Shown here: positions 2,767-39,917 of the stretch, in pieces
Layout: each line of letters starts with the position of its first letter
Numbering within the stretch: the first letter of the stretch is position 1
Source: Macrostomum lignano
Lineage: Eukaryota
Assembly: GCA_002269645.1 (NCBI GenBank)
Contig: NIVC01000037.1
Location: 372,001 to 436,000 of the forward strand
DNA: 64,000 nt
Direction: 5' to 3'
Program-made: the position numbers and the translations under genes
Notes under the pieces: generated by a model
The model's database searches: none
What the model was told of the DNA's origin: nothing
What the model saw: the letters and a program-made list of their open reading frames with translations, nothing else

Positions 2767-3129
2767 TAAATAGGTAAACCTGGTTTGTTTGTTTAGTCTA
2801 TAATATTTTGTTGCAAATCTAGTTCAAAAAAATCTACATTAAACAACCATTAAGAGTTTGTTGTTTTTTAATTTAAGTATATTTTTAACTTTAACACGCA
2901 CTTTGCATTCCAACATGCTGCATCACATAGCACAGATTTTGTAAATGATCGCTTCAAATTCACAACAGAGTGATTGTGGAGTGGCAGGTTCGATTGTCTT
3001 TCCAGATTTAAAATCACACACTTTCGCTATTCTTAACTGCTTTGTTTCTGTTGCCTTTGTTTGAAAACTTATTTTTATTAAAACTTTACCACGTTTTGAT
3101 CGATTTGTTGTTCAAAGCTCTCTCCGCTT

Positions 3130-3865
3130 TTTCTGTTTCTCCCCCCTCTGTTTCTCCCCCTCTGTTTCTCCCCCTCTGTTTCTCTCCCCTCTGTTTCTCT
3201 CCCCTCTGTTTCTCTCCCCCCTGTTTCTCCCCCCCTCTGTTTCTCTCCCCCCTGTTTCTCTCCCCTCTGTTTCTCTCCCCCCTGTTTCTCCCCCCCCTGT
3301 TTCTCCCCCTCTGTTTCTCTCCCCTCTGTTTCTCCCCCCTCTGTTTCTCCCCCTCTGTTTCTCCCCCTCTGTTTCTCTCCCCTCTGTTTCTCTCCCCTCT
3401 GTTTCTCTCCCCCCTGTTTCTCCCCCCCTCTGTTTCTCTCCCCTCTGTTTCTCCCCCCTCTGTTTCTCCCCCCTCTGTTTCTCTCCCCTCTGTTTCTCCC
3501 CCCTCTGTTTCTCTCCCCTGTGTTTCTCTCCCCTGTGTTTCTCTCCCCTCTGTTTCTCTCCCCTCTGTTTCTCCCCCCTCTGTTTCTCTCCCCTGTGTTT
3601 CTCTCCCCTGTGTTTCTCTCCCCTCTGTTTGTCTCCCCTCTGTTTCTCTCCCCTCTGTTTCTCCCCCCTGTGTTTCTCCCCCCTCTGTTTCTCCCCCTCT
3701 GTTTCTCTCCCCTCTGTTTCTCCCCCTCTGTTTCTCCCCCTCTGTTTCTCTCCCTCTGTTTCTCTCCCTCTGTTTCTCTCCCCTCTGTTTCTCCCCCTCT
3801 GTTTCTCCCTCCTCTGTTTCTCTCCCCTCTGTTTCTCCCCCTCTGTTTCTCCCCCCTCTGTTTCT
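3130..3865. repeat. Pyrimidine-rich ~15-bp minisatellite (CCCTCTGTTTCTCCC)
   Basis: Visible tandem repeat with strong C/T strand bias. Confidence 0.95.
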
Positions 3866-4395
3866 TCGCTCACTGGCGACTCGAACCCCGGACCTGTCTT
3901 TAGACTTCTTGAGCACATGGGGCATTGTTGTAAAGCATTGCATTGATTGTTTTTTTCTAGTCAGGCAGACGTGCAACTGGCGTCACATTGACTGTTTCTT
4001 ACAGAAAAATTTTTTAATTGACCTAATACTCGTTATGCTACATGAGTTGATTGCATTGCTAATCCCAGATCAGACATTCCGCAATCTGTGCTCCAGTGCC
4101 TGCAAATTTTAAATTGTTTTTCAAATGTAATGTAATACTCACAGTAGGCTAATAGTGTGTTTATTGTATTTTTTATGCAAACTTGACGGTAGCCGTCTTA
4201 ATATTTCTGTCCGATTTCATCTGTCGAAAGACGGTTTTGAACTTACGCAATAAATCATTCGCCAGAAGGCACAATTTATTAAAATTTGCAAATATTTTGC
4301 TTTAAATAATAATTGAAATTAATCATTGTCAATTGAATGTGCGAGGCTGGTGTTCTGCTTTTGACATGCTTTTGAAATTTGGGCCTCTGACATCA

Positions 4396-6190: not shown

Positions 6191-6780
6191 TATTGGTATA
6201 TTCCCTGATTCGGCTGCATCAGATAAATAAATTATGATAAAAATTTTGTCCTGCTGGAATTAGCTACTCAAAGTAGCGCGTCTAATTTTGAAAATAACAA
6301 CAAAAAATAGAATAGATAAGAGTGCACTGAGTATTTTTTATTGGCTTGAGCTGCTTCCTACTGTCAAACTCGCCAATTGGAAAAAAATTAGTTAATTGCC
6401 GGTGGCAAGCTGACAATAGCGCTGCAGGGCCCAGCTATAATTCCTATCTGTCTGTAGCATCTGTGCCCCAAATTATTGATAAGGTCAAGGTCATCGAGTT
6501 GAGAGTTGGGCAGCGCTCACGCTTGCATGGCCCGCCTCTCTGAAGAGCCAATCGAGTTGACCATTAATTCAGATTAACAATCAGCCCTTGCTCAATCCTA
6601 TAGATGGGATAATTGCATTATGTTTATTGTGGACTAGAACTGGACAGGAAAATTAATTGCCCTGCCATTGTTGCCAGGGAAACCATTGTTTCGATGGGGA
6701 TTATAAAGAGTCAATAAAATAATGGGCATCGGCCAGTGATAATGTTTCTAGGGTGAAATAGGAGGATTGAATCTGTATTT

Positions 6781-7229
6781 AAAGATACCCAAATCTGGAC
6801 TTAAGCATACCTGCATTTGGACTTAAACTTACCTGCATATGGATTTAAAGATACCTGCATCTGGATTTAAAGATACCCAAAGCTAGATTTAAAGATACCT
6901 GCATCTGGATTTAAAGATACCTGCATCTGGATTTAAAGATACCTGCATCTGGATTTAAAGATACCTGCATCTGGATTTAAAGATACCTGCATCTGGATTT
7001 AAAGATACCCAAAGCTAGATTTAAAGATACCCAAAGCTAGATTTAAAGATACCTGCATCTGGATTAAAGATACCTGCATCTGGATTTAAAGATACCTGCA
7101 TCTGGATTTAAAGATACCTGCATCTGGATTTAAAGATACCTGCATCTGGATTTAAAGATACCTGCATCTGGATTTAAAGATACCTGCATCTGGATTTAAA
7201 GATACCTGCATCTGGATTTAAAGATACCT
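6781..7229. repeat. 22-bp minisatellite GATTTAAAGATACCTGCATCTG
   Basis: Visible tandem repeat ending just before the exon at ~7238/7286. Confidence 0.95.
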
Positions 7230-7285: not shown

Positions 7286-10200
7286 ATGCCAAAGTTGCAC
7301 AGACTGTCGCAACTGCGCGCCGCCGAGGCCGCCGCCGCCGGTCCCCGCATCGACATCGAGGCGGAGCTGGGCCGCTGGAATCATCGATTCCGCGAAGCGG
7401 CCAGCCAGGTGGCAGCAGCCGCAGCTTCCTCCTCCGCCTCAACGTCGTCGGCGAGGCCGAACTCGCCAAGGCTGGCTGGCATCGCGGCCAGGGCAATGCT
7501 GCTGCGCCACCGGGGACCGGACGGCCTGGCCGACTTCGGCGGCGGCGGCGGCGGCGGTAGCCGCGGAGGCCGCTCGGCCAGTCTGATTGCGGCCAGGCGG
7601 AAAAACCTTCGGCCGAGGAGCCCGCCGACACAGACGTCAGCGGCCCCGGCGGAGCAGCCGACCGCTGGCCGGCTGTCGCCAGTGCCGTCGGATTTGCGAC
7701 GACAACAGCAGCGGCAGCAGCGACGAGTCTCCATAGCCTCCACAGCCTATGAAGGGCCCGAGCTGCCGATGGAGAACAGCAGTGTTAGCCACTGACAGCT
7801 TGTGAAGCCTAGATTAGCGGCCAGCGTTGACTCTGGTGTCACAGACCCTGCATGGTTTGATTCGGTGCCCGGCCACATTCATTTGGGGCTTGCGTGCACG
7901 AAAATTGGCCGGTGGAAGGGGGTTGTCATGCCATTCACTGCCATGAGGGCCAGCCCCCAAGGCACAGAAAGTGTACATCCTGTGTGAGCGTGTGTGCGAG
8001 TGCGTGCCTGCGTACGTATCCGTGTGTACGTGTCCGACATTCAGAGAGCCGAATTGCTAGTTTACAAGCTCAGCTGCCAATACCTTCATAAGTAGTTGAG
8101 GCAGAGGCACTAGTAAAGTGAGCCCCAGAAACTCAGCACAGTAAACTGACCAGCCAATTTTCCTCTTCAGCTCCAGTTTCTGCTCAGCGCTGCCAACGTC
8201 GCCACAGAAGACGCCGAAGCCGATTCAGCGGACGACACCAACTCACCGATGCCGCCGCCGCCGGGGTCGTCAACGGCGACGCCGAAGCGAAAGCCGCTGC
8301 AGGCGAAGCAGAAATCGCAAAAGCAACAGCAGCAAAAGCAACAGCAGCAAAAGCAAGAGAGACAAAAAACGGCTGGTTGCCGAGTGGTCGGGCAGCTGAA
8401 CCTGGACCAGGCTGATGAGGCAAATGAGGCGGCCAGCCTGGCAACACGGGACCGACTCGGGGGTGAGCAGTAAACTGGGGCAGGACAGCTCAGCGGTGAA
8501 CGCGTCAAAACCCTTGGTTCGATTCCGTGCGCAAACACATTCATTCATTCGGGGCTCGTGTGCACGAAAATTGGTCTAAGGAGATTGTCCTGCGATTCAC
8601 ATCCAAGAGAGCCAAACCCCATGCTTAACAATTAGAAAGTCAGGGCCCCTGTGTACACCCTGTGTGAGCATGTGCACGAGTGCATGCCTGCGTACAGTAC
8701 AGTACACCTCCGGCAGGTCCGGGCCAGTCGCGCGACCGCGGTCTCCAACAACAACTGACGGCCGTCCTCGGTGACGTCAGCCGGCAGCGGCTGCGCAGCT
8801 TCCTGGCCGCTGTCCGCGCTGCCGCCGGGCCCGAGGGCGGCCTCGCCGAGCCGGAGCTGCGCCGCCTGGTGGCCGTCGAGTTGCCGCCGATGCCGGCCGG
8901 TTGGTCGGGCCTCCTGGCTCGACTCGTCCACGTCTGCGCGGCCGACAGCGACGACACCACCGCCGCCGCCGCCGACATCGGCGGAGACTCCGACGCTGCC
9001 ACCGGCCCGGCCGTGGACTCCGAGCGGCTCGCCGTGTGGCTGACCGCCGCGCATGCCCGCACCAGACGGGACAGCGTGGTGGCAGCGGCAGAGTCCGAGA
9101 TGGCGACTCCGCCGGCCAAGAAGTCGTCTTCGTCGTTGTCTGGATCGTCGGGCTCCCGCGGCGGCGCCAACGAGGCCGAGCTGATGGCGCGCGCCGTGGA
9201 CCAGTTCGACTCGGGTCGGCCGGCTTTCTTTGATCTTGCCGCCCTGCGGGCCGACCTGAAGAGACGCGACTCGGCTAAGCGGGGCAAATTGCCGAAGTCT
9301 GAGGTTGGTGGCCCGGTGGCGTCTCCCATGGGGCTCTCCAGTGGGATTTTTATGGGCTTTCCGGTAGGGTTTCTGGTGGGTTTTTGGATGGGATTCTTGG
9401 TTGGGATCACTATGGGATCTAGATGGGATTTGGATGGTATTTAGATGGGATTTGGATAGGGTCTGGATGGGATCTAGATGGGATTCGAATGAGATTTGGA
9501 TGGAATTTGGATGGGATCTAGATGGGATCTGGGTGGGAGCTTAATGGGATTTAGGTGGGATTTGGATGGGATTTGGATGGTAGTTCGAATCTTTGTTCGG
9601 ATATTAGTTTGAATTTCCTGCCCTTTTTTGCATTTTGATTTTCTAATTGGGATTCACAAGGTTACCGTTCAGGTTTCAACTGGCTGCAACAGGCAAGGGA
9701 AGGCATCTGGTTGACTTCAGTTAGGCTCGTAAGAAATGGAAGCGGATTAACTCGAATAAAATAACTCAACCTCCTCAGATTCTTCAAGCCGTCAGCCATC
9801 ACGACTGCCCAGTTTATGGGGCGCTGCTCAACTGTCTACTCAAACTGTGCGACGCCGAGACCACGGAGATAATCCGGTGAGCAGGGCTGACTGACCCGTA
9901 GCATTTTTTAATAACCGAAAAATTGATTCATACATGATGAAGGACCTGGGGTACGTGAGCAACATAATAAAGCTGGTTTTGCATACAGAAGAAGAAAATA
10001 ATTTTAAACTGCCCAGATTTGAGGACCAAATTTACCGGATGATCAGGTGAGAGCGACGGTTTTCTGCGAACTTCTTTTCCACTATAATTACACCTGCTGC
10101 CAATATGCTATTCCTGTGTGCTACGGGTACGGTTGAAGAAGAGGGACCCTTACACTCTGACCCACTTTTGTCTGACCCAACCCACCTCTGACTCACTTGT

Positions 10201-13200
10201 CTGACCTGCCCCACCTCTGACCCACTTTTGTCTGACCCAACCCAACTCTGACTCACTTTCGTCTGACCTGCCCCACCTCTGACCCACTTTTGCCTGACCC
10301 AACCCACCTCTGACCCACTTTTGTCTGACCCAATCCACCTCTGACCCACTTTTGTCTGACCCAACCCAACTCTGACTCACTTTCGCCTGACCTGCCCCAC
10401 CTCTGACCCACTTTTGTCTGACCCAACCCAACTCTGACTCACTTTCGTCTGACCTGCCCCACCTCTGACCCACTTTTGCCTGACCCAACTGTTATGTTTT
10501 GGATATGAATGTTATATTACGGCATAGCCGTCTGTGCTGCGCTTAGTTCGTATCTGCAGCTCTCGTATATTTAGCTTATAAAGACAAAGCTAAGGTCATA
10601 GACAACTTAATTCGGTCTGTCTGCGACATCCCTTTTTTCCAAAAAGAAGTGTCATACGCATTAATGGATGAATGAATGAAAATGGCATTGTCAGTTAGTT
10701 CAGTTTGAGTGCATATAATTATGTAGCCTTGTAAAATTGAGTTGGCTTCACTTCACGTCCATATCGTGTAATGTATTTTGTTCCACCAGATTTTCCAGAA
10801 TCCAGCTGTGAATTGTGTACTGTATCGGATGCATGAGCGTCTGAGCTGTAAGTCTGAATCGTTCCATTGTTAGAATCATGATTAGGTAGTTGAATCCTTG
10901 AATACTCTGGTATGGTCTGCATTCTGCAGTCTGTATTGCGCTTTGCCAGAAATCTGCGATTTCGTCTGAATTCACGACCTGTAGCAGTTCGAACTTTGTA
11001 TGACCTGTCTGGGTCAGTGACATCGGGTTTCACGATTTCTGCAGGAATCCATTGTCTTCGATCTTCTTGCATCCACACCTGATCTCCTTCTTTAAACGGT
11101 CGCAGGTCTCTTGCAGTGCGATTGTAGTAGAATGCCTGTTTACTGTTCTCTGCTAAAATCTCAAGTTCACGTTTTGTCCAGACTTGTCTTGGTTTCAGCT
11201 GTTCAATGGGCAGTGGCATTTGATATCTGAGCTTTCGTCCCATCACTAGCTCAGCCGGTGTCGGTAGCCCTCTTTCAATTGGCGTATTCCGATAGTGTAG
11301 TAATGCACAATTTATATCTTCTGCTTTGTTTAGAAATCCTTTAACTGTCTGAACAGCTCTTTCTGATAGGCCATTTGATTGAGGATATTTTGGCGACGAT
11401 GTCCTAATTCGTATACCTTTCTGGTCAGCAAACTCTTTAAACCTGTTGGATCCAAATGGAGGTCCGTTGTCACATCTTATCACTTCTGGAGTACCATAGG
11501 TAGCAAAATATTGTGACAGCTGTTTTATGACGCACTCTGCTGATGTAGTCGTGATTTTATCAGTGCAGATCCATCGACCTAACCTGTCAACCAGGACAAT
11601 GTGTGTTTCTCCTTTCCAATAGAAAATGTCAGTTCCACACTCTTGAAATGGATACTCAGGTATTTCAACCATTTTCATGGATTCTTTTTGATGAAGAGCT
11701 TGGTAACTTTGGCATTTTTCGCATGAAGAAATGTATTGCTCAATGTCATGGCGCATTCGAGGCCAAAATACAGATTCAGTAGCCTTCATCAACGTCTTTT
11801 CCACGCCTTGATGACTTTCATGGAGGATTTGAAGCATTTGTCTTCGCATTGCATCAGGAATGAATATTTTGCTGCTCTTGTATATGAGTCTGTCATTCTC
11901 CATCAGTTCATGCCGAATATTCCAGAATGGCTTCAGCTCTTTAGCTATTTGGGATTTGGCATCTGGCCAACCCTCTCGAATCTGGTCCTTTAGCTTATGA
12001 CATAAATCGTCAGCATTTGTGTGATGCTGGATGTCCTTTAGCAAGTTGTCTGGTAGGCATACACGAGCTACTCCAAGTATTTGGCACTGAATATCATCAT
12101 CAATATCATTGGATGAATGTACGGATTTCAGATAAGCGCGGCTTAGTGTATCCGCAAGGTATAGTTCTTTTCCGGGTACATACGTCACATTGAGATCGAA
12201 TTCTTGAATTTTCAAAGCTAGTCGCTGCAGTCGAGCTGATAGTTCACTCAGTGGCTTTTTCATAATGAATTGCAGGGGCTTGTGATCTGATTCAACCTGT
12301 ACGTGCCGACCCCATAAGTATTGTCGAAATCTGCGACATCCAAAGACTATTGCCAAGAATTCTTTTTCGATTTGAGCATATTTCTTTTGAGCAGGAGTCA
12401 TCGATGACGATGCGTATTCAATGACGTGTCCGTCTTGCATCAATGCGGCTCCGAGTCCATCTTTACTGGCATCTACACTTAGAATGACACTCTGATCTGG
12501 GTTAAATTGTCCCAATAGTGGAGCTTTGCACAGTGATTCCTTAATTGCTTCATATGCTTCTTCCTGCCGTTTTCCCCAGTTCCACGCTACATCTTTTTTC
12601 AGTAACTGTCGCAAAGGTGAAGCAAGCGCTGAGAAATTTGGTATGAACTTCGACAAGAAGTTTGCGCTGCCGATGAATCTTTGTAGCTGCGCGGCTTTTT
12701 CAGATATCTGGGAGTAACTGTGCGGATGCGGCATGTCTTTGATGCTTCGTATCTTTTCCGGATCGATCTTGACTCCTTCGCTGGTTAGAATATGTCCTAG
12801 GAATTTCAACTCTCGCTGTCCGATTTTAGCTTTGGTCTTGTTTAGCTTTAAATTCTTATCCTTGCGCTGCTGTAGCAGTTGCCTCACCGAGTCATCATGC
12901 TCTTTTCTTGTTCTGCCCCACACGATTATATCGTCAATATAGTTTGCGGAGTTTGCAACATGACTCGTGATCTCTTCTCTGATTTTTCTCTGATACGCCT
13001 GTGGAGCATCCTTCAATCCGAATGGCAGTCTGTTCCACCTGTAGACTCCGAAAGGTGTATGAAAGGCGGTTAGAAGAGAGCTTTCATGATCTAAAGCTAC
13101 TTGATGAAATCCTGCTGTAGCATCAAAAGTTGAAAAAAACTTTGCGCTAGTCATCTTGCTAATAATTTCATTATATGATGGAATTGGGTACCGGTCTCGA

Positions 13201-16200
13201 ATGATGAACTCGTTTAGACTTTGCGGATCGAGACAGAGACGCACAGAACTGTCAGGCTTCCACACAACCACAACGTTGGATACCCACTCCGTGGGGTGCG
13301 AACACTGGGAAATCATTCCTTGCTCACTGAGGCGATGCAGCTCATCTCTTAATGCTTTCAATTCTGCAAACGGAACTTTTCTTGGACCCTGAACTCTGGG
13401 AACAGCGTTCGTCTGTAAAACTATGTGGTGTGTTCCTGGCAGACAACCTAGCCCTTCAAAGACATCGGCGTATTCTTTCAAAATCACTTCCTTTGTAAGT
13501 GGTTCTTCCGATACCGGAACATCCTGTTGAACAGCATGCAGTATCCGTATCAGTCCGAGACTCTCTGCTGTATTTGTCTCAAGCAATGGCATATTATCTT
13601 CAGCGATGACAAAGAATTTTGCTTGAATTTCTTCATTCTGGTGTCTGAGAAGCAGTTGAATTTGTCCCAAAACTGTCAGCCTCTGTTTGTTGTACTCAAC
13701 TAACTGTGTGCTTCTATCCTCTCGGTATTCCTTCTTGGTAATCTGCCTAAGTCTTTTTGCAGACATAATGTTAACATCGGCTCCTGTGTCGATTTTAAAC
13801 GAAATCAACTGACGATCCTCAACCAGTACACTCGCGATTGTCTTGCTGTTCGTGCGAGCGGTCTTATTTTGCATTATTTCCAGCCATCTGGTCACAGCTA
13901 GCAACTGAAGATACAGCCCATGATTTTGTTAAGCTGCCTCCTGTGTCTTCGTCATTTTCGTCATCATGTTCATCTACCAGTCTGACATGTCTTGTAGGGT
14001 TATTTCGAAACTTTTGCTGACACATGGCTTTAAAATGGTTCTTTCTTCCACAATTACTACACATCTTTCCAAATGCAGGACAGTGCTTACTACCAAAGGT
14101 GTGCTGTTTTCCGCAGTATCTGCAACTGGTTCTGCCCTGATGCGAGTCCTTGCGGGAGCCTTGGGAGGAGTTTCTCACTCGGTTTCTCTGGTGCTTTGCT
14201 GTGGGTGCCATTTTTTTAACTGTGTCCACACTTGGTCTTGGGTTTTCATACGCCTTACCGATCATTTTCTGTGCTTGCACTTTGGATGCTTCACATGCTC
14301 GACACAATGCGATTGCCTTCTCGAGCGTCAGCTTGTCCTGTTCCAATAGCCTCTCCCTGACCGAAGGATTGTGCACTCCATACACGATTTGGTCTCTTAG
14401 AATTGCATTTTCGATTGTTTCGGATGCCATTGGCTTTGCAAAATTGCATTGTTTTATGAGTGTTCGCAGCTCGCCAAGATAGTGATCAAATTCTTCGAAT
14501 TGCTGCTGTGTGCGCATTCCGAACTTGTATCTTTCGAATGTTTCACAGTCCAGCGGCTTGCAGAATTTCTCAAATGCGGCAACAATTTGGTCGAATGAAT
14601 TACCTTCAGTCAAATCTAGCGTATCGTAAATATCTCGACCTTGTTCACCCAATGCCGTGAGGAGAATTGCTGTCTTGACCTCGTCGGCCTCTTTTTCTCT
14701 CTTAGTCGCCGTGAGGAATAGTTTGAAACCGTTGATCCACTTTCGCCATTTCTCGGCTTTGTTTTCATCAAAGGAAAATGGTGCAGGCGGCTTTAGGCTT
14801 CCAGAATCAGCCATATGTATGCTTTAGTGGAGCTCGAATTGAAGTTGCACTTTTACGGTTTCCTCTGACACCATGTTATGTTTTTGGATATGAATGTTAT
14901 ATTACGGCATAGCCGTCTGTGCTGCGCTTAGTTCGTATCTGCAGCTCTCGTATATTTAGCTTATAAAGACATAAAGCTAAGGTCATAGACAACTTAATTC
15001 GGTCTGTCTGCGACACCAACCCACCTCTGACCCACTTTTGTCTGACCCAATCCACCTCTGACCCACTTTTGTCTGACCCAATCCACCTCTGACCCACTTT
15101 TGTCTGACCCAATCCACCTCTGACCCACTTTTTTCTGACCCAATCCACCTCTGACCCACTTTTTTCTGACCCAATCAACCTCTGACCCACTTTTGTCGGA
15201 CCCAATCCATCTCTGACCCACTTTTGTCTGACCCAATCCACCTCTGACCCTCTTTTGTCTGACCCATCCCTCCGCTGACCCAACCCACTTCTGCCCCACT
15301 TTCGCCTGACCCATCCCACCCCTGATCCACTTTCTCCTGACCCAACTACTTGCATCCTATGCTTCACTTTTGCATCTAACAATACCTTCTAAAATGATAA
15401 TGAGTCATGCAGTCTACCTAAAATTCTTAAATGCTAATATTTTTTATGAATCTCGTTAAACTTGGATTAAAAACACTGTACTATAGTACTGTGAGTAGCT
15501 AAGCTCGGCAGTATATTTAACGAAAACAACCTCTCACCGCCCCTTGGGGCTGGCCGCAGCTGGAAGGATTTCGTCGACTTTCTGGAGCGCGCGCAGGCTG
15601 CCTACTTCCAGCGCAACCCGAACGCTCTCCGGGCGCCACCGCCTAAGCTGGCAGCTGAGAAATCAAAGACGCCGACAGAGCCCCCGCCGGAGCCGGCAGT
15701 GCAACCGCAGGACAGGTTCAAAAGTGCCGCCGCCAAGGTAGGCTGAGGGCGGGTGTTGCTGTAAATGAAAAAAAATCATAGTTTCATATAAATCATATAA
15801 ATCATATAAATCATAGTTTATTAATTTGAATTCGCGCCAAAAATGAGAACCTTTAAACACCCTTGATTTATTTTTATCTAATGAACAAAAATTATTATCC
15901 TGTCATTTTTCTGAGCATTTCAAGCGTCCTTTTGCAATAAATTCAGGAAACTTAATTGACAATAAATTAGATATTTCAGTGCCATTTCAGTGTGATTATA
16001 GTGCCATTTAAGTGCCATTTAAGTGCCATTTAAGTGCCATTTCAGTCCGGTTTTATTGCCACATAATTTCCAGTTCCATATCAACTTTCTTGCCGTCTGA
16101 TTTCAGACAATATATAGAAAATGCTAGCATGCAGTTCAGAGGCTTGAAAAGCCCAGACATTCACACCGCGCAGATTATTGCAGGAGAGTTGAGGCGAAAA

Positions 16201-16885
16201 CCGGCATCGGCTGCAGGCTGCTCGGTGCTGCAGGCTCCCGTCGCCGCTGCCGTCACGATGAAGGTGTCCCAATTGCACCAACCAAATTAGCTCGGAGCAC
16301 CTGGCTAGACTCCAAGGACAATTTGAATAGAAGGACGGGAGACTTCTTTTCTTAGAAAATCTTTGAAGGGCTGGTTTTACCAAAAACGCTACGGAGATAT
16401 AATTATAGGACGTCTGTTAATGCACCGAACTTATTTTTTACATTTGTTTTTTGTTAAAGTAAAGAAATTCTTCGGTAGCATTTTTTGCGGAGAGCTGGCA
16501 GATTTGAAACTTTTCTAAGAAACGAAGTTTCCCGTACTTCTACTTAAGTCGCTCTTTCTAATACGTTTTTACTGTTTATGTAGCTCTCCGTAGTTTTGAG
16601 TCCAGGTTAGCTGTGACTGTAGCCAGGGACATCAGTCTCTCTCTCTCTCGCTCTTTCTCGCTCTCTCTCGCTCTTTCTCGCTCTCTCTCGCTCTTTCTCG
16701 CTCTCTCTCGCTCTTTCTCGCTCTCTCTCGCTCTCTCTCGCTCTCTCTCGCTCTCTCTCGCTCTTTCTCGCTCTCTCTCTCGCTCTCTCTCGCTCTCTCT
16801 CGCTCTGTCTCTCCCTCTCTCTCCCTCTCCCCCTGTCTCTCTTCCTCTCTCACTCTCTCTCTCTTTCTCTCCCTCTCCCCCTGTC

Positions 16886-16917
<32 letters not shown>

Positions 16918-19900
16918 CCAGTTTTGAGTCCAGACTAGCTATGACTGTAGCCAGTCATGCAGTTCACCAGTGCAACTCAATTGCATGATGCATATTCGGA
17001 CACAAATGAAAGAATTCATTTCATTTTCTGCTTGCCTTCTGCAAACTTCAGCGCACTGAACCAACCACTGCGTCCGTGTCGGCTGCGAGACCACCACCAC
17101 CACCACAACAGCAAGAGTTGCAAAAACCCCAGCAGCAAACGGTTAAAAAAGATTCTAACATAAACGCGGCTGGTTCGAAAGAGAAAACTAGTGAGCAAGC
17201 TTCCTTCTGGATTATGTGGTGCAGAGTGGGATGGGTGCAGGGTGGGGTAGGTGCAGGGTGGGGTGGGTGCAGGGTGGGTTAGGTGCAGGGTGGGGTGGGT
17301 GCAGGGTGGGGTAGGTGCAGGGTGGGGTGGGTGCAGGGTGGGTTAGGTGCAGGGTGGGGTGGGTGCAGGGTGGGGTAGGTGCAGGGTGGGGTGGTTGCAG
17401 AGTGGGGTGGGTTGTAGAGTGGGGTGGGTTGTAGAGTGGGGTGGGTGCAAAGTGGGGTGGGTGCAGCGTGGGGTGGGTGCAGAGTGGGGTGGGTGCAGCG
17501 TGGGATGGGTGCAGGGTGGGGTAGGTGCAGGGTGGGGTGGGTGCAGGGTGGGTTAGGTGCAGGGTGGGGTGGGTGCAGGGTGGGGTAGGTGCAGGGTGGG
17601 GTGGTTGCAGAGTGGGGTGGGTTGTAGAGTGGGGTGGGTTGTAGAGTGGGGTGGGTGCAGAGTGGGGTGGGTGCAGCGTGGGGTGGGTGCAGAGTGGGGT
17701 GGGTGCAGCGTGGGGTGGGTGCAGAGTGGGGTGGGTGCAGCGTGGGGTGGGTGCAGAGTGGGGTGGGTGCAGGGTGGGGTGGGTGCAGAGATGGGGTGGG
17801 TTGCAGAGTGGGATGGGTGCAGAGTGGGGTGGTTGCAGTGCAATGAGGGGTGAAGGAAGGCAGAGTGATGCTCATTGTTTCATACATGTAATTCCAAAGT
17901 TACTGCACTTACTCTACTCTATAGGCGTGGAGCCAGTCCCAGCCAAGTCGCAGGATGCAGAAGCTCAACTGCAGTCTGAGCTGCCGACATTGCAGGAGTC
18001 AGTTGCTCAGAAATCAGAACAGTTGCAAGAAACGCAAAAAAAGCAGCAGCAACAACAACAACAACAGCAGCAGCAGCAGCAGCAACAACAGCAGCAGCAG
18101 CAAGCTGTTTGCGATGAGTCTGGTGCCGTGTCAGCCACAGTCCTTGGCCGCTGCTGCGTCGCCTTTTGCCCTACCGGCTTCGATCCGATAGCGGAAGCGC
18201 CCGGAGACCCGCCGTTGAGAAGCTTGCAGCTGGAGTGGGTGTGAGTGAGGGTGGGCTGCAGCTGGAGTGGGTGTGAGTGAGGGTGGGCTGCAGCTGGAGT
18301 GGGTGTGAGTGAGGGTGGGCTGCAGCTGGAGTGGGTGTGAGTGAGGGTGGGCTGCAGCTGGAGTGGGTGTGAGTGAGGGTGGGCTGCAGCTGGAGTGGGT
18401 GTGAGTGAGGGTGGGCTGCAGCTGGAGTGGGTGTGAGTGAGGGTGGGCTGCAGCTGGAGTGGGTGTGAGTGAGGGTGGGCTGCAGCTGGAGTGGGTGTGA
18501 GTGAGGGTGGGCTGCAGCTGGAGTGGGTGTGAGTGAGGGTGGGCTGCAGCTGGAGTGGGTGTGAGTGAGGGTCAGCCGTCAGCTCCCACCTTTTCAGCTA
18601 CGGCTACAGAGGCAATGACTGCCGCAACAACATCCTCGTGCTGCCCTCGAGGGAGCTGCTGTACTTCACGGGGCGAGTGGCCGTGCTGCTGTTGGTAACG
18701 CGGCAGCAGCAGAGGCACTACTGCGAGCATTCGGCCGAAATAACCAGGTGATAATCAATGTTCTCCTCTGTCGGTTTTTTTTTGAATTTGCACATTCTAA
18801 TAGTAAATTTTGCATTGCAGCATCGCTCTGCATCCGGACGGTGTTACCGTGGCAACCGGACAGTGTCCGGCCGAACCGGAAGGGCAGGCAGCATCCATTC
18901 GCCTGTGGAGTGCAGACAGCCTGCAGACTGCCTGCGTGCTGAAAGGTGACGAACTGCAGGGCTCGATCAACTGCCTGGCATTCGCGGAGCAGAGGGTGAG
19001 CGCTGAGCACACTGTGAGCAGCTTCATTTCCCTTGCTCTCCTGAACCTGCTTCCTCTTTGAGAGCTTCTACACGTGTATCCGAAAGTGAGACTCGAACTC
19101 CCGATAGGCCAGGACCGTTTTTTGAGTTCTTACTCGGTTCTGTCGCAACAACCCAACTAGCAACTTTTCTTGCACACACTTTAAGAGACATTTGCTTCAA
19201 ATTCTTTCTATACTACTCTTCAGTAGGCGATCTTTAATACTTTGCATTTACTTGATTCGATAACCCTGGCTCTAAACATAGCCCTAAACCCTAGCCATAG
19301 CCCTAGCCATAACCATAGTCCTAACCCTAGACATTACCCTAGCCATAACCATAGCCCTAACCCTAGACATTACCCTAGCCATAACCATAGCCCTAACCCT
19401 AGACATTACCCTAGCCAAAACCATAGCCCTAACCCTAGACATTACCCTAGCCATAACCATAGCCCTAACCCTAGACATTACCCTAGCCATAACCATAGCC
19501 CTAACCCTAGACATTACCCTAGCCATAACCATAGCCCTAACCCTAGACATTACCCTAGCCATAACCATAGCCCTAACCCTAGACATTACCCTAGCCATAA
19601 CCATAGCCCTAACCCTAGACATTACCCTAGCCATAACCATAGCCCTAACCCTAGACCTTACCCTAGCCACCATAGCCCTAACCATAGCCCTAACCATAGC
19701 CCTAGCCCTAGTCCTAACCATAGGCCTAGATCTAGCCACACCCCTAACCCAACCTTGCAGGACCGCCTGTGGAGCGTCGCCTCCAAGCCAGACGGCCAGT
19801 CCGTCCTGGGCCTGTGGGACACCCGGCAGTCCCGAGGCAGCCGCCTGTGCTCAGTCCAACTGGGCACGGACGTCCTCTGCGACCTGGCCTGCAGCCCCGC

Positions 19901-22900
19901 CGATCCCACTCTGCTGGTGACCGCCGGTCGCGAGCACGCCGTCTGGTGGCGCGTCGCCGTCGACGGCTGCAGCATTGAACGGCGGGCCAGCGCCGACTTC
20001 AAGCGGCTGACTGGCCGGGCGCCGCGCTTCGTGGTAGCGCTGCTGCACTCGCCAACTGACGGCCGGCTGGTGAGCGGCGACTCAAGCGGCAACGTCTGCG
20101 TGTGGACAGCCGCCGGCTCCGGGGAGATGCTCGACTGCGTGCAAGGAGCGCACGAGGTCAGAAGGGACGGCGTGTGACCGATATTGAAATGCGTAGATCT
20201 AAATATTCTCAGGAGCGTTTCACAAACCAGCAGGGGACTGACGGCAGTTCTGCCATTCCGCTGGCTCCTGAGCACATGCAAGTGCCAATACTGTACGCAG
20301 GCACAGCACTCATACACACGCTCACACAGGGTGTACACAGCGGCCTTGATTTTCTAATCGTCTGGCATGTACACTCTCTGAGACTTGGTGGGGGGTTTCA
20401 CATAGTACTTCAGTAAGTTCACCAATTTTCGAGCTGGTGAAACTTTGAGCGCGTGAGAGCGATCGATTCTCTCAATCTTTTTTCTCACCGCAGGGTCCGG
20501 TGTTTGCTCTCTGCCTTTACAACAGCAAGTGGCTGCTGACGGGCGGGCGGGATGGCCGCCTCCGCTGCTGGCAGTGGGGCAGCGGCCTCGAACGGCTGGG
20601 AGAGATTCGCCTGCCAGACGGTGAAGGCGGCATTCGCTGCGTCCGGATTCTTCGTGGCGGCCAGGGCGATCAGCTGGTGCTGGGCACCACCGCCAACTCC
20701 ATCTTGCTGTGCAGGATCAACACGGAGCAGGGCTGGTAGGTGGCGATGCCCTGCTGCACTGCATTGTAAAATCAAGAAGATTAATATTGAGGGTTATTTT
20801 AGATTTTTTAAAATTTATCCAGAGGTTGTCTTTTATCCAGAGAGAAGAGCCAAACAGCTTGCTTGATTTGAAGTCTGTTGGAGACTGCAGCTAGGAATTC
20901 CGCTTGATCGGCTTTATTGTCTATGGCCGAGAGCAGTTGAAGATTATTAACTTGATCGGATTTATTGTCTATGGCCGAGAGCAGTCGAATATTCTTAACT
21001 TGATCGGCTTTATTGTCTATGGCCGAGTGCAGTTGAAGATTCTTAACTTGATCGGCTTTATTGTCTATGGCCGAGAGCAGTCGGAGATTCTTAACTTGAT
21101 CGGCTTTATTGTCTATGGCCGAGAGCAGTCGGAGATTCTTAACTTGATCGGCTTTATTGTCTATGGCCGAGAGCAGTCGGAGATTCTTAACTTGATCGGC
21201 TTTATTGTCTATGGCCGAGTGCAGTTGAAGATTCTTAACTTGATCGGATTTATTGTCTATGGCCGAGTGCAGTTGAAGATTCTTAACTTGATCGGATTTA
21301 TTGTCTATGGCCGAGAGCAGTCGAATATTCTTAACTTGATCGGCTTTATTGTCTATGGCCGAGTGCAGTTGAAGATTCTTAACTTGATCGGCTTTATTGT
21401 CTATGGCCGAGAGCAGTCGGAGATTCTTAACTTGATCGGCTTTATTGTCTATGGCCGAGAGCAGTCGGAGATTCTTAACTTGATCGGCTTTATTGTCTAT
21501 GGCCGAGAGCAGTCGGAGATTCTTAACTTGATCGGCTTTATTGTCTATGGCCGAGTGCAGTTGAAGATTCTTAACTTGATCGGATTTATTGTCTATGGCC
21601 GAGTGCAGTTGAAGATTCTTAACTTGATCGGATTTATTGTCTATGGCCGAGAGCAGTCGGAGATTCTTAACTTGATCGGCTTTATTGTCTATGGCTCAAG
21701 CCTCTCCACCTAATGCCGCCCCCTGCACTTCAGGTGCCCCCTAGACGGTGCCATCGTAGAGCCGGTGGCGCTCACCCGAGGCCACTACGACCAGCTGCAG
21801 GGCCTTGATTGCGTGACCGGCCGTCCAGGCCTTTTCGTCACGGCCGGCTTTGATGGTCAGGCGTGCGTCTTTAGCGCGGAGACGCGACAGTGCCTGCATA
21901 GGACTGCCGTTCCAGTGAGGCTCATGGACTGGTGATGGGGCTGATGATCGGGCTGGTGATCGGGCTGATGATGGGGCTGGTGATGGGGGTGATGATGGGG
22001 CTAATGATGGGGCTGACAATGGGGCTGATGTTGGGGCTGATGATGGGGCTGATAATGGAGGTGATGATGGGACTGATGTTGAGGCTGATGATGGGGCTAA
22101 TGATGGAGCTGATGATGGGGCTGATGTTGGGGCTGATGATGAGTCGTGAAACTCATTATTCGCAGTTTTGGCTGCCTCAATCTGTCTATAAGCTAGCTGA
22201 ATCAAGCAAATGTCAGCTTAAAAAACCGCTTGCAGAAGAAGTGCCTCTCCTGCGTCTGCTGGAAGGAAACCAGCACAATCGTGCTGGGCACCCGCTCCGG
22301 CGAAGTAATCATTCTTTTCGAGAAGAATGGCAGCCTAATCGAAGTTTTTAAGGAGAGTGTCGCAGCGCATCGCATCGATGCTATTGCTATGTCACACGGT
22401 GAGTGAATTCCACGGGGTATAACAAAGTGCTTGCTAGCGATAAGGCAGTGGAGTGAGTTGACTGGACAGGGGCTTGTGAGGTGGTGGGGCAGGGAGTGAG
22501 GTTGGTGGGGCAGGAGTGAGGTGGTGGGGCAGGAGTGAGGTAGGGGTGATTGACTGAGTGAGGCAGTGCAAACAACTGAGGCCACCCCACCCTGCCAGAC
22601 AAGCAAGCAATCGCCGTTGGCTCCTCTGACGGCCGCGTCCACTTTCTGGAGCTGCAGCCGGACCCGGCGGACCCCGGAATGAAATCATGGCGTCGGCCCG
22701 AGACTGCCGCTGCCAGCAACCTGCTGGTCTTGCGCCGAGGCGGTGTTGAATCGCTCGACTTTGCCAATGCCACTTTCGAGGGCTCTCGACTCCTCTGCGC
22801 CAGCAACTCGACTGGAGAGGTCGCCTTCTGTGAGTTCAATAGCATTGCTATGCACTTTTATGAACAATTGCATGACAAAAATATCATTCTCCCGAAACGC

Positions 22901-24209
22901 CAGGTGATGCCACTCATTATCACCTGGTCGTGGACGCTGAGCGATTTAGAGACGTTTCCTGGAAAAACTGCAGCTCACTGTTTGCGTACTTCACAGTTGG
23001 TGAGTGGTTTTTTGCAGCTCGCTTTGTATCAAACCTGTTGCCATGGTAACTACATGTACGATCGTAACACAAGACTAATCCCAGTGAAACTTGAACCAAA
23101 GTCAATTAACGCTCATAGCTCTTGGGTTAGCCAGTCGACACCTCGAAAGTTAGGCCTTTTAAAATTTTAAATTCTACAAGTATTTCATTATCGATGAAAA
23201 AACTTTTCTGTAGATCAGTAGCTTCTGCCAAGATCTGGCATAAGTTCACTGGCGCACACCTGCTTAACTTCCTTCAAAGGTGCCTGGAATTCGCCTCTGC
23301 TTGACCCGCCGTCCGGTGCACGGATTTGCTCGACCGCGGTGTCTCTGAAGGCTAAACTGCTGGCCGTCGGACTGAGCAACGGTCGAATTCTGCTGTACAG
23401 ATTTCCCTGCGTCATGCCCGCAGTGAGTGCCTCCTGTAGGCAAGGCCTTAAAACACGTGACCACAACTAAAGCTCTGTAGAGAAGGACTGCAATCACGTG
23501 ACCACAACTAAAGCTCTGTAGAGAAGGACTGCAGTCACGTGACCACAACTAAAGCTCTGTAGAGAGGGACTGCAGTCACGTGACCGAAATTAACGCTCGG
23601 TAGAGAGGGACAGCAGTCACATGACCACAGCTCCGGCTCTGTAGACAAGTCACATGACCACAGCTCCAACTCTGTAGACAGGGCACATGACCACAGCTCC
23701 AGCTCTGTAGACAGGGCACATGACCACAGCTCCAGCTCTGTAGACAAGTCACATGACCACAGCTCCAACTCTGTAGACAAGTCACATGACCACAGCTCCA
23801 GCTCTGTAGACAGGGCACATGACCACAGCTCCAGCTCTGTAGACAGGGCACATGACCACAGCTCCATCTCTGTAGACAAGTCACATGACCACAGCTCCAG
23901 CTCTGTAGACAAGTCACATGACCACAGCTCCAGCTCTGTAGACAGGGCACATGACCACAGCTCCAGCTCTGTAGACAAGTCACATGACCACAGGTCCAAC
24001 TCTGTAGACAGGGCACATGACCACAGCTCTAACTCTGTAGACAGGGCACATGACAGACTGCCCTCACTCCCCTACACAACCCTCAGGCGGAATGCCGGCA
24101 GATCGCCGCTCCGATTCGCCCGGTCCAGCTTCGATTTACTCGCGACGGCGCCCACCTGATCGGCATTGGCGGCAGCGACGCGTCGGTGGTGCAGTGGCGA
24201 CTCGCCTAG
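7286..24209 (+). CDS. EML: EML (EMAP-like) HELP/WD40 protein with N-terminal C1orf87-like EF-hand-type module; join(7286..7783,8171..8462,8717..9303,9779..9876,15560..15737,16174..16263,17052..17190,17925..18240,18598..18747,18821..18995,19761..20156,20494..20735,21734..21914,22236..22398,22599..22829,22904..22999,23280..23422,24087..24209), 4098 nt, 1365 aa
   Basis: Splicing restores the HELP motif LQLEWV|YGYRGNDCRNN, followed by ALHPDGVTVATGQ, WD repeats (LVSGDSSGNVCVW, GPVFAL...LLTGGRDG, LLYRFPC) and the typical EML end LIGIGGSDASVVQW. All 17 introns are GT-AG and phase-consistent, and the total length is divisible by 3. The EML half is high confidence. Exon 16174-16263, the donor at 7784 and the true start are less certain; the frame is open from an AG ending at 7237. 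Confidence 0.85.
7810..8030 (+). mobile_element. tRNA-derived SINE-like element, copy 1
   Basis: A-box-like TAGCGGCCAGCG (7815), B-box-like GGTTTGATTC (7854), shared core GTGCACGAAAATTGG and 3' block CCTGTGTGAGCGTGTG..GAGTGCGTGCCTGCGTAC. Confidence 0.6.
8483..8702 (+). mobile_element. tRNA-derived SINE-like element, copy 2
   Basis: AGCTCAGCGG (8487) and GGTTCGATTCC (8516) resemble Pol III A and B boxes. It has the same core and 3' block as copy 1. Confidence 0.65.
9400..9580. repeat. Degenerate ~11-bp repeat (GGATTTGGATG/GGATCTAGATG)
   Basis: Visible intronic tandem repeat. Confidence 0.85.
10155..10489. repeat. ~31-bp minisatellite (CTGACCCACTTTTGTCTGACCCAATCCACCT), left part, interrupted by the LTR element
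   Basis: The same array resumes at 15016. Confidence 0.93.
10490..10628 (-). repeat. 3' LTR (139 bp)
   Basis: TGTTATG...CTGCGACA, matching 14874-15015. Confidence 0.95.
10629..10640 (-). other. Polypurine tract GGAAAAAAGGGA
   Basis: Purine run abutting the 3' LTR on the minus strand. Confidence 0.85.
10719..13904 (-). CDS. pol: Pol polyprotein (protease, RT, RNase H, integrase)
   Basis: Motifs: FKIDTGA protease; RLCLDP...FSTFDATAGFHQ...RLPFGL...YIDD RT; VDASKDGLG...ESDHKPL RNase H; HESHQG...CEKC zinc finger; D..DNG..E integrase core. The ORF is uninterrupted over 1061 aa. Confidence 0.97.
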   Translation of the reverse strand: MLAVTRWLEIMQNKTARTNSKTIASVLVEDRQLISFKIDTGADVNIMSAKRLRQITKKEYREDRSTQLVEYNKQRLTVLGQIQLLLRHQNEEIQAKFFVIAEDNMPLLETNTAESLGLIRILHAVQQDVPVSEEPLTKEVILKEYADVFEGLGCLPGTHHIVLQTNAVPRVQGPRKVPFAELKALRDELHRLSEQGMISQCSHPTEWVSNVVVVWKPDSSVRLCLDPQSLNEFIIRDRYPIPSYNEIISKMTSAKFFSTFDATAGFHQVALDHESSLLTAFHTPFGVYRWNRLPFGLKDAPQAYQRKIREEITSHVANSANYIDDIIVWGRTRKEHDDSVRQLLQQRKDKNLKLNKTKAKIGQRELKFLGHILTSEGVKIDPEKIRSIKDMPHPHSYSQISEKAAQLQRFIGSANFLSKFIPNFSALASPLRQLLKKDVAWNWGKRQEEAYEAIKESLCKAPLLGQFNPDQSVILSVDASKDGLGAALMQDGHVIEYASSSMTPAQKKYAQIEKEFLAIVFGCRRFRQYLWGRHVQVESDHKPLQFIMKKPLSELSARLQRLALKIQEFDLNVTYVPGKELYLADTLSRAYLKSVHSSNDIDDDIQCQILGVARVCLPDNLLKDIQHHTNADDLCHKLKDQIREGWPDAKSQIAKELKPFWNIRHELMENDRLIYKSSKIFIPDAMRRQMLQILHESHQGVEKTLMKATESVFWPRMRHDIEQYISSCEKCQSYQALHQKESMKMVEIPEYPFQECGTDIFYWKGETHIVLVDRLGRWICTDKITTTSAECVIKQLSQYFATYGTPEVIRCDNGPPFGSNRFKEFADQKGIRIRTSSPKYPQSNGLSERAVQTVKGFLNKAEDINCALLHYRNTPIERGLPTPAELVMGRKLRYQMPLPIEQLKPRQVWTKRELEILAENSKQAFYYNRTARDLRPFKEGDQVWMQEDRRQWIPAEIVKPDVTDPDRSYKVRTATGREFRRNRRFLAKRNTDCRMQTIPEYSRIQLPNHDSNNGTIQTYSSDAHASDTVHNSQLDSGKSGGTKYITRYGREVKPTQFYKAT
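13864..14814 (-). CDS. gag: Gag (316 aa) with tandem zinc knuckles
   Basis: W.KW...F..FL N-terminus, LRDQIVYG motif, and CRYCGKQH...CPAFGKMCSNCGRKNHFKAMC double knuckle typical of Mag-clade elements. Confidence 0.93.
   Translation of the reverse strand: MADSGSLKPPAPFSFDENKAEKWRKWINGFKLFLTATKREKEADEVKTAILLTALGEQGRDIYDTLDLTEGNSFDQIVAAFEKFCKPLDCETFERYKFGMRTQQQFEEFDHYLGELRTLIKQCNFAKPMASETIENAILRDQIVYGVHNPSVRERLLEQDKLTLEKAIALCRACEASKVQAQKMIGKAYENPRPSVDTVKKMAPTAKHQRNRVRNSSQGSRKDSHQGRTSCRYCGKQHTFGSKHCPAFGKMCSNCGRKNHFKAMCQQKFRNNPTRHVRLVDEHDDENDEDTGGSLTKSWAVSSVASCDQMAGNNAK
14864..14873 (-). other. Primer binding site TGGTGTCAGA (consistent with the tRNA-Leu 3' end)
   Basis: Immediately internal to the 5' LTR and begins with TGG. 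The 10-nt match is to my recollection of the tRNA-Leu acceptor end. Confidence 0.7.
14874..15015 (-). repeat. 5' LTR (142 bp)
   Basis: Identical to 10490-10628 except for +T and +TA indels. Confidence 0.95.
15016..15345. repeat. ~31-bp minisatellite, right part
   Basis: Continuation of the 10155-10489 array. Confidence 0.93.
16635..16918. repeat. (CT)n/(CTCG) microsatellite
   Basis: Visible. Confidence 0.95.
17215..17838. repeat. G-rich minisatellite (GGGTGGGTGCAGGGTGGGGTAGGTGCA variants)
   Basis: Visible; dense GGG/GGGG runs. Confidence 0.95.
18225..18572. repeat. 32-bp x 11 minisatellite containing the exon end and splice donor
   Basis: Unit TGCAGCTGGAGTGGGTGTGAGTGAGGGTGGGC at 18225, 18257 ... 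18545. Confidence 0.97.
19270..19750. repeat. 36-bp telomere-like minisatellite (CCCTAA CCCTAG ACATTA CCCTAG CCATAA CCATAG)
   Basis: The unit parses into six CCCTAA-like hexamers. Confidence 0.9.
20285..20362 (-). mobile_element. 3' fragment of the SINE-like family
   Basis: The reverse complement reads ATTAGAAAATCAAGGCCGCTGTGTACACCCTGTGTGAGCGTGTGTATGAGTGCTGTGCCTGCGTACAG. Confidence 0.65.
20904..21696. repeat. 48-bp minisatellite (AACTTGATCGGCTTTATTGTCTATGGCCGAGAGCAGTCGGAGATTCTT and variants)
   Basis: About 16 tandem copies inside intron 20736-21733. Confidence 0.96.
21925..22142. repeat. 12-bp repeat GATGATGGGGCT
   Basis: Visible intronic tandem repeat. Confidence 0.9.
23452..24050. repeat. 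Minisatellite, ~40-bp then 33-bp units (CACATGACCACAGCTCCAGCTCTGTAGACAGGG)
   Basis: Fills the last EML intron. Confidence 0.95.
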
Positions 24210-39308: not shown

Positions 39309-39917
39309 TTGTGGACAGGGACATCACAGAGAAGCGAAATCTTCACCCTGCATATAGGATAAAAGCAGTTTAAGGTTGTGAACAAAGTCTTCAATGCAGT
39401 TCGCAGTCTTTATTGGGCATGAGAATGTTACCACCATTTCATTAGAAATTTACATGGGTCAAAAATTGAAGAAACATGCAAACAGCCATCGAAAGTAATA
39501 AGAAAATATAAAATAAGATTTGGAGTACACATTTATTACTAACAGCATTAACAAACAAAACTTGGTATATATTCGTAGCATTCTGATTAAAAAAAAGAAA
39601 ATGTCAATTTTGATTTCTTGAACGGATCATTTATATCGGTGTAAATGCTATTTATACCTACAGCCGAAATGCTTTAGGAATGTTCTTTAAACATGCATTT
39701 TCAGTTTGAGTAATATTTAACTCAACTTTTATTATCCGGTCAAGAGATCACTAAATTATCAGTGTAAAATTTCTTACGTAAAATGGAAAAAGTCTAACAA
39801 AAGTACATCAGAAAAACTTTTTTATCAAAAGGCTGAGTACATCGAAAAAAAAGTTTTCATTTCTCTTTTTCAACCCAATAAAAGTACATGAGATTCTAAG
39901 AAATCATGAGGATTCGA

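Follow-up and report, generated by a model that had tools for sequence, protein, structure and literature searches.

A C1orf87-like EF-hand module fused to an EML TAPE domain in a predicted gene of Macrostomum lignano

Introduction

EML proteins have been studied almost only through the vertebrate members EML1-4, in connection with cortical malformations and EML4-ALK, and an N-terminal coiled coil and basic region dominate models of their binding to microtubules. A stretch of 64,000 nucleotides of the Macrostomum lignano assembly GCA_002269645.1 (contig NIVC01000037.1, positions 372,001 to 436,000 of the forward strand), referred to here as the window, carries on its plus strand, between positions 7286 and 24209, a series of exons of a different composition. 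Those encoding a module that resembles the EF-hand domains of the stand-alone protein C1orf87 are followed by others encoding the HELP motif and double propeller (TAPE domain) of an EML. Do these exons form one gene, what is the N-terminal module, does it sense calcium, and what could such a protein do? The reading developed here, which is regarded as probable, is that they constitute an intact gene of an old metazoan EML subfamily, in which an EF-hand module, a paralog of the C1orf87 N and M domains, is followed by a variable low-complexity linker and the TAPE domain, and which may have an axonemal role. Confidence in the identity and architecture of the fused EML is high.

Domain organisation of the predicted protein

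The gene model was built by hand from a three-frame translation and splice sites and was then refined against relatives. It comprises 17 exons (Table 1) with a coding sequence of 4038 nt, or 1345 codons, and a single stop at its end; all 16 introns have GT..AG ends, and the frame is free of internal stops and frameshifts. A preliminary description of this locus, made from the DNA alone, had proposed a phase-consistent open reading frame (ORF) of 18 exons: the open frame stands, the exon count does not. The ATG at 7286, the exons here numbered 3, 5 and 8 and the stop at 24207-24209 are reproduced with AG/GT borders, and the spliced peptide reported as FDLAALRADLKRRDSAKRGKLPKSE, ILQAVSHHDCPVYGALLNCLLKLCDAETTEII and RWKDFVDFLERA in succession is the exact product of exons 3, 4 and 5.

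The TAPE part of the protein is complete. Residues 693-1345 form a full HELP and EML double propeller, preceded by a Gln/Pro/Ser-rich linker with a run of 20 glutamines, just as the poly-Gln linker leading into HELP and WD40 repeats had first been described. Judged by their Pfam scores, the domain matches of the predicted protein are far above chance. HELP (PF03451) covers residues 693-732 with 55.9 bits (cut-off 27; profile positions 1-40 of 40; E 3e-15), Beta-prop_EML (PF23409) residues 740-1014 with 224 bits (cut-off 88; 1-265 of 267; E 2.9e-66) and Beta-prop_EML_2 (PF23414) residues 1045-1344 with 145 bits (cut-off 90; 1-266 of 266; E 3.1e-42). In the N-terminal part, DUF5580_M (PF20742) is matched at residues 435-506 with 34.1 bits when the module is searched alone and 31.4 bits in the full protein (cut-off 24); the DUF5580 N-terminal domain (PF17743) gives no Pfam match at E <= 1 in the module.

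Fifteen of the 17 exons, those from 8717 onward, are backed by tblastn or profile matches to relatives. Exon 6 has no homology in relatives, as expected of a linker whose length varies from 55 to 587 residues among them. Exon 15 carries RDVSWKNC..FTVG.W, which matches the conserved motif W.[ST]..C.L...G.W of relatives, and its inclusion raises the Beta-prop_EML_2 score from 118 bits in three pieces to the 145 bits in one piece given above; with this exon not yet counted, 554 of the 585 conserved TAPE columns are already filled. Exons 1 and 2 lie in GC-rich low-complexity DNA in which every frame is open, and have no homology to the Macrostomum lignano protein P0122 (UniRef A0A1I8IEK1) or to other relatives. 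Both are tentative assignments based on open frame and splice consensus, exon 2 having been placed because its phase fits exon 3, which needs one upstream base.

Relationship of the N-terminal module to C1orf87

DUF5580 is the Pfam family of C1orf87 (CREF), and proteins named 'C1orf87-like' in Saccoglossus and Branchiostoma match its N, M and C domains. An alignment of 18 N-terminal modules of window-like proteins was compared by hhalign with an alignment of 14 C1orf87 family members. The two are similar with 99.8% probability (E 1.4e-28) over 202 columns, collinear across the C1orf87 N and M domains; on this evidence window residues ~264-510 are homologous to the M domain and appear to be so to the N domain. 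The C1orf87-like nature of the module, proposed from motif similarity, is supported both by DUF5580_M above its cut-off and by the profile comparison that had been suggested for residues ~260-520. The motif of human C1orf87 cited there is itself found almost letter for letter in a mammalian C1orf87, that of Galeopterus, which contains ..LSLSFRKEDRSFSGCLP..IKWQNFVELLSRA. C1orf87 differs from the window protein in being a stand-alone protein of 500-730 residues with a third domain, DUF5580_C (PF20743), and no propeller. DUF5580_C occurs in every stand-alone member listed, but neither in the window protein nor in any fused relative scanned.

Searched against solved structures, the profile of the 18 modules matches EFCAB6 best (E 2.7e-25 summed over repeats), followed by CFAP115, RSP7 and Rib74, all of them axonemal EF-hand proteins. 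A module of EFCAB6 type rather than C1orf87 type was considered and rejected, because the EFCAB6 score sums ten weak repeats. The best single EFCAB6 repeat reaches 24.6 bits against 55-92 bits for single domains of C1orf87 members, several of which are matched in one stretch over profile positions 2-211 (Lineus, 91.7 bits). C1orf87 is thus the closest relative. The axonemal proteins share the EF-hand pair fold and are the best solved-structure matches in sequence, but they are remote kin with many repeats and no propeller.

The model that AlphaFold2 builds from the module alignment has a mean predicted local distance difference test score of 83. It consists of two helical lobes, both containing short paired strands as is usual for EF-hand pairs, and module residues 120-145 form a disordered loop rich in Ser. 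Of the Foldseek matches listed from the PDB, every one whose title allows identification is an EF-hand protein (troponin C, calmodulin, centrin) or a chain of an axoneme model, and chains of mammalian doublet-microtubule models can be superposed on one lobe at 1.9-2.6 A across 83-85 columns. By both methods the window module has the EF-hand pair fold.

Occurrence of the fusion in other animals

The same order of parts is found in proteins of 930-1470 residues from molluscs, a brachiopod, a bryozoan, nemerteans, Macrostomum, echinoderms, amphioxus and corals. The fusion of the module to a full EML TAPE domain in one gene, as first described, thus recurs in relatives from at least eight phyla, and the search for this architecture in other invertebrates that had been recommended finds it from molluscs to corals. 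The best matches of the TAPE half are proteins of ~970-1150 residues rather than canonical EMLs (Pomacea, Tubulanus, Haliotis, Ylistrum, Patella, Solemya, Branchiostoma and Oculina), many of which carry PF20742 or EF-hand Pfam domains ahead of HELP and the propellers. One or both of these N-terminal matches combined with HELP and propellers occur in Haliotis, Ylistrum, Solemya, Lingula, Watersipora, Lytechinus, Antedon, Branchiostoma and Oculina; DUF5580_M together with HELP and both propellers is recognised by Pfam in Lingula, Ylistrum, Lytechinus and Watersipora. In Pomacea and Tubulanus the module is present by alignment, though it gives no Pfam match.

The N-terminal module alone leads to the same proteins. 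An exhaustive HMMER scan with it retrieves proteins of Macrostomum, Lingula, Watersipora, Lytechinus, Antedon, Owenia and Branchiostoma, mostly of 930-1470 residues and named 'EML2/EML4-like'. A word-indexed protein search with the same module was empty; the relatives surfaced only in the exhaustive scan, so the empty result reflects a limit of sensitivity and is not evidence of absence. Neither the word-indexed search with the module nor that with the TAPE half returned a protein encoded by the window itself, and an exact look-up of the single-exon Ly6-like ORF of the window was likewise empty.

Among these models, Lingula XP_013415115.1 ('EML4 isoform X2'), Watersipora XP_067943293.1 ('EML2'), Lytechinus XP_041458220.1 and Macrostomum lignano A0A1I8IEK1 have the same architecture as the window protein and share with it the motifs SRQRLR, TGRDSV, P.YGALL..LL.RC and W..F..FLEKAQ, followed by HELP and TAPE. 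The window protein is 25-34% identical to them in the module and 33% in TAPE; its best relatives, those of Macrostomum, are 34-47% identical to it. P0122 aligns with the window module (E 1e-28, 34% identity) from a point exactly at the exon 2/3 junction, and then with HELP (E 5e-12), in the order of the window. These two proteins share an Ala/Asp/Ser-rich insertion of ~25 residues in the second loop of the first EF-hand pair (residues ~340-365, within exon 3), which is absent from the other 16 of the 18 aligned modules. The database entry for P0122 has DUF4485 and ~800 residues of coiled coil upstream of the EF-hand module and stops just past HELP. This upstream part has no counterpart in the window; P0122 is probably a chimeric or truncated gene model.

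These comparisons bear on whether the gene model itself is a mis-join, in which a short C1orf87-like gene and a neighbouring stand-alone EML gene have been threaded together through low-complexity DNA. In favour of such an error, exon 6 and the 5' part of exon 7 lack homology support, the region is rich in minisatellites with all frames open, and some database models of relatives are devoid of the N-terminal module (Ptychodera P0007 and Branchiostoma belcheri P0006). Such an error is nevertheless highly improbable, since the same order of parts occurs in independently annotated proteins of many phyla and in the Macrostomum protein. It also occurs in a 3374-nt Logan contig from a coral-like sample, which contains the whole fused ORF of 977 codons uninterrupted and, given the many exons of the window gene, is what an assembled transcript would look like. 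The exon chain of the window points the same way: it offers no in-frame ATG from the N-terminal module to the middle of propeller 1, a direct join of exons 5 and 7 would be out of phase and exon 6 restores the frame, and the EML part has no N-terminal domain of its own. On this comparative evidence, together with the independent search with the module alone, the predicted fusion is real and not a mis-join.

The architecture is already present in RefSeq, UniProt and Pfam under automatic names of the 'EML2/EML4-like' kind, and the window copy is one divergent ortholog. In the literature searched, no article links DUF5580 or C1orf87 with EML, deals with an EML that bears EF-hands or studies any of these database models.

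Calcium-binding loops

The preliminary description went on to suggest a possible Ca2+-sensing EML. On this reading the module would bind Ca2+ and thereby switch microtubule or tubulin binding by TAPE. The EF-hand pair fold of the module is compatible with this idea, and part of the family retains suitable loops: the PROSITE EF-hand pattern PS00018 is matched in 5 of 21 fused modules (Oculina, the coral-like Logan protein, Ylistrum, Haliotis and Solemya). Canonical loops are kept at EF1 and EF4 in Oculina, EF3 and EF4 in Ylistrum, EF4 in Haliotis and EF3 in Solemya. Many other orthologs have a near-canonical EF4 loop, DDEKNGxISWPEF, and Oculina (1.4e-16) and Ylistrum (5.7e-9) give significant matches to Pfam EF-hand_7.

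However, neither the window module nor its Macrostomum relative has a loop that matches PS00018. In the EF3 loop of the window protein, D-S-A-K-R-G-K-L-P-K-S-E, ligand positions 3 and 5 are taken by Ala and Arg, and in its EF4 loop, D-A-E-T-T-E-I-I-R-W-K-D, Glu replaces Gly6 and Asp occupies position 12. In the module alignment every member has a degenerate EF2 and every bilaterian member a degenerate EF1 as well, and the stand-alone C1orf87 family is nearly devoid of canonical loops (one match in 10 proteins scanned). Calcium sensing by the window protein, as first proposed, is accordingly improbable. Since the loops have lost the pattern of Ca2+ ligands, the window module probably acts as a structural domain that does not depend on Ca2+; regulation by Ca2+ may have been the ancestral state, which some lineages keep.

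Comparison with other EML proteins

Canonical EMLs, such as human EML1-4 and the sea urchin 77-kDa EMAP, have HELP and both propellers in the same order and at full Pfam length. They differ from the window protein in their N-terminal trimerisation coiled coil, which is replaced here by two C1orf87-type EF-hand pairs, and in their TAPE domains, from which that of the window is separated in a well-supported bilaterian clade. A profile of the trimerisation domain built from five canonical EMLs recognises every one of 10 canonical EMLs (E 1e-13 to 1e-31), in agreement with the coiled coil attributed to them in the preliminary description, and none of 14 fused proteins: the window protein gives no match, and the other 13 give none better than E 0.25.

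Drosophila DCX-EMAP has its EML TAPE domain preceded by a doublecortin domain instead of a coiled coil, and the Acanthaster 'EML2 X2' model P0100 likewise joins TAPE to another N-terminal domain, doublecortin PF03607. Doublecortin itself binds microtubules, whereas the EF-hand module of the window protein has no known microtubule-binding activity. A conserved basic linker like that of EML4 was looked for among the fused relatives and was not found. In the absence of a coiled coil and of a consistently basic linker, lattice binding, if any, must work differently.

Evolution of the fused gene

A neighbour-joining tree of 30 TAPE domains (300 bootstraps) unites the bilaterian fused proteins, including that of the window, in one clade with 100% support. 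The coral fused domains are not reliably placed and fall with canonical EMLs in 57% of bootstraps. Homology of the modules argues for a single fusion event shared by corals and bilaterians.

A stand-alone C1orf87 with N, M and C domains exists beside the fused gene in Branchiostoma and in the crinoid Antedon, and among nemerteans Lineus has a stand-alone member and Tubulanus the fused form. Since the two genes coexist, they are old paralogs rather than orthologs. No vertebrate or arthropod fused protein occurs in any of the match lists, which were obtained with divergent queries; loss of the fused gene in vertebrates and arthropods is a hypothesis.

Sequence context and integrity of the gene

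The whole window is unusually rich in tandem arrays. Minisatellites with periods of 10-48 bp and up to 38 copies occupy most of the larger introns and create spurious long ORFs on both strands; one of them, a 22-bp unit in 21 copies, ends 57 nt upstream of the putative ATG. Arrays elsewhere in the window, which read as repetitive ORFs of 300-900 residues, are probably non-coding satellites. The array at the end of exon 7 repeats a 32-bp unit in which the last 16 nt of the exon (..LQLEWV) and the GTGAGT donor are followed by 10 further bases of the intron, so that intron 7 has 11 identical donors, of which only the first avoids an in-frame TGA. Either this array has expanded very recently or it is an artefact of assembly. 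Intron 4 (5.7 kb) contains a Ty3/gypsy-type long terminal repeat (LTR) retroelement antisense to the gene, with one 31-bp unit arrayed on both of its flanks. Upstream of the gene lies a UBD/UBTD-like ORF, and downstream of it are a Cys-loop receptor fragment and a complete-looking Ly6/QVR-type gene.

Could the fused gene by now be a pseudogene or a non-functional duplicate? Its long branch, its degenerate EF loops, a retrotransposon with intact ORFs in intron 4 and the exon 7 donor repeated 11 times, with every copy but the first bringing in a TGA, might suggest so. This is nonetheless very unlikely, as 17 exons and their 16 introns show the intact frame and splice borders described above, the conserved TAPE columns are almost entirely filled and the propellers match their Pfam models essentially at full length. 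The retroelement and the repeats are intronic, and the degenerate loops and the insertion are common to Macrostomum and hence lineage traits, not signs of recent decay.

Table 1. Exons of the fused gene and other features of the window (positions within the 64,000 nucleotides)
Feature	Position	Strand	Content and evidence
Exon 1 (tentative)	7286-7783	+	Start codon ATG, then 166 codons of low complexity; donor GTTAGC; placed by open frame and phase
Exon 2 (tentative)	8171-8462	+	Acceptor alternatively 8177; Lys/Gln-rich, donor GTGAGC, ends in phase 1
Exon 3	8717-9303	+	First EF-hand pair, C1orf87 N-domain-like (DVSRQRLRS...TRRDSV), and start of second pair (FFDLAALRADLKRRDSAKRGKLPKSE); tblastn with Macrostomum, Lingula and Haliotis proteins, module alignment, hhalign
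Exon 4	9779-9876	+	ILQAVSHHDCPVYGALLNCLLKLCDAETTEII, middle of DUF5580_M-like pair; tblastn with P0121, 52% identity; Pfam DUF5580_M
Exon 5	15560-15737	+	RWKDFVDFLERAQ, end of EF-hand module and start of linker; tblastn with P0121; DUF5580_M to residue 506
Exon 6	17052-17190	+	Pro/Gln-rich linker; phase-compatible bridge between exons 5 and 7
Exon 7	17925-18240	+	Linker, Q20 run (18035-18103), first half of HELP (..PLRSLQLEWV); Pfam HELP; BLASTP to HELP of P0122, E 5e-12
Exon 8	18598-18747	+	YGYRGNDCRNN..., second half of HELP and start of propeller 1; tblastn, 48-63% identity, five relatives
Exon 9	18821-18995	+	Propeller 1; tblastn; Beta-prop_EML
Exon 10	19761-20156	+	Propeller 1; tblastn with Lingula, E 5e-23
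Exon 11	20494-20735	+	End of propeller 1; tblastn
Exon 12	21734-21914	+	Start of propeller 2; tblastn; Beta-prop_EML_2
Exon 13	22236-22398	+	Propeller 2; phase-consistent splice sites; Beta-prop_EML_2 coverage
Exon 14	22599-22829	+	Propeller 2; splice phase; Beta-prop_EML_2 coverage
Exon 15	22904-22999	+	96 nt, 32 codons (..RFRDVSWKNCSSLFAYFTV); fills 30 conserved TAPE alignment columns
Exon 16	23280-23422	+	Propeller 2 (..GRILLYRFPC); splice phase; Beta-prop_EML_2 coverage
Exon 17	24057-24209	+	Last blade (..GGSDASVVQWRLA) and TAG stop 24207-24209; tblastn with Lingula C-terminus
Gene-region minisatellites	6771-7229, 9383-9580, 16636-16917, 17218-17838, 19261-19737, 20903-21695, 21929-22141, 23454-24054		
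32-bp array	18225-18572		Unit TGCAGCTGGAGTGGGTGTGAGTGAGGGTGGGC, 10.9 copies, 100% identity
LTR retroelement	10086-15375	-	Ty3/gypsy type, in intron 4
Retroelement pol ORF	10719-13904	-	Uninterrupted, 1061 residues; RVT_1, RT_RNaseH, Integrase_H2C2, rve
Retroelement gag-like ORF	13864-14814	-	316 residues, intact
31-bp arrays flanking retroelement	10086-10596, 14927-15375		Same unit on both flanks
UBD/UBTD-like ubiquitin-binding-domain ORF	763-1221	+	E 5.9e-38
Cys-loop receptor transmembrane fragment	27426-27896	-	Neur_chan_memb
Ly6/QVR-type protein	41037-41585	-	182 residues, single exon; DUF5746, E 1.9e-46
ORF of 176 residues	47855-48385	-	No Pfam match; contains ..KRFKKYLVEQKLPDNIKTMPIRYLCAYMRLWF.., putatively similar to the N-terminal part of Crypton/DUF3504-type mobile-element proteins
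Other long tandem arrays	51741-54455, 38195-39394, 32052-33083, 58108-59145, 3042-4112		Read as repetitive ORFs (e.g. HKDLG repeats, 904 residues)

Proposed role

The TAPE domain is established as the tubulin-binding unit of EML1 (reportedly by Richards et al. 2014). By analogy with EML1-4, the TAPE domain of the fused protein would bind tubulin or microtubules, and the EF-hand module would provide targeting or bind a partner, its likeliest destination being the microtubules of axonemes (in cilia or flagella). Axonemal targeting is suggested because the paralog C1orf87 is a motile-cilium protein and the next-closest relatives of solved structure are axonemal EF-hand proteins. C1orf87 had initially been described as uncharacterised, which is outdated: protein maps of motile cilia report it in motile ciliated cells, and it is listed as a ciliary tip protein in a DNAAF9 interactome study (PMC12700831). 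The Rosetta-stone argument drawn from the fusion, according to which a C1orf87-type module would work with microtubules, agrees with these cilium data. An axonemal or ciliary microtubule role of the window protein is therefore favoured, though with clearly less than an even chance.

Several observations weigh against the proposed reading. The 5' end is a prediction, as are both linker exons and the donor chosen among the 11 of intron 7. The window protein lies on a long branch and is only 33% identical to its best TAPE matches; over conserved columns it is 34% identical to the fused clade against 29% to canonical EMLs. Coral fused proteins group with the bilaterian fused clade in just 17% of bootstraps, and the Foldseek E-values of the module are weak (0.01-0.1). 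Expression in ciliated cells and microtubule binding are ascribed to the window protein by analogy. Nor is the linker consistently basic among relatives, its isoelectric point ranging from 4.8 to 10.4 over lengths of 55-587 residues. EML4 binds the microtubule lattice via its basic N-terminal region (10.1101/466979), and lattice binding of this type may not apply to the fused protein.

A broader proposal can be formulated, although it is rather unlikely as it stands. EF-hand-bearing EMLs would represent an ancient (pre-bilaterian) and hitherto unrecognised class of axonemal or ciliary-tip microtubule-associated proteins, in which the module is the partner-binding device of the human ciliary protein C1orf87; the fused gene would have disappeared from vertebrates and ecdysozoans, leaving them with the stand-alone paralog at most. 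If this were true, work on the fused form in a flatworm or sea urchin amenable to experiment would reveal the job of C1orf87 at cilia.

Implications

A widespread invertebrate subfamily with an EF-hand module in place of the usual N-terminal region shows that TAPE is a movable unit, combined at its N-terminal side with at least three types of partner, namely a coiled coil, doublecortin and an EF-hand module. The value of the finding is that of a hypothesis generator: the paralogy with C1orf87 provides a testable lead, namely that the EF-hand domains of a human motile-cilium protein may operate beside tubulin or microtubules.

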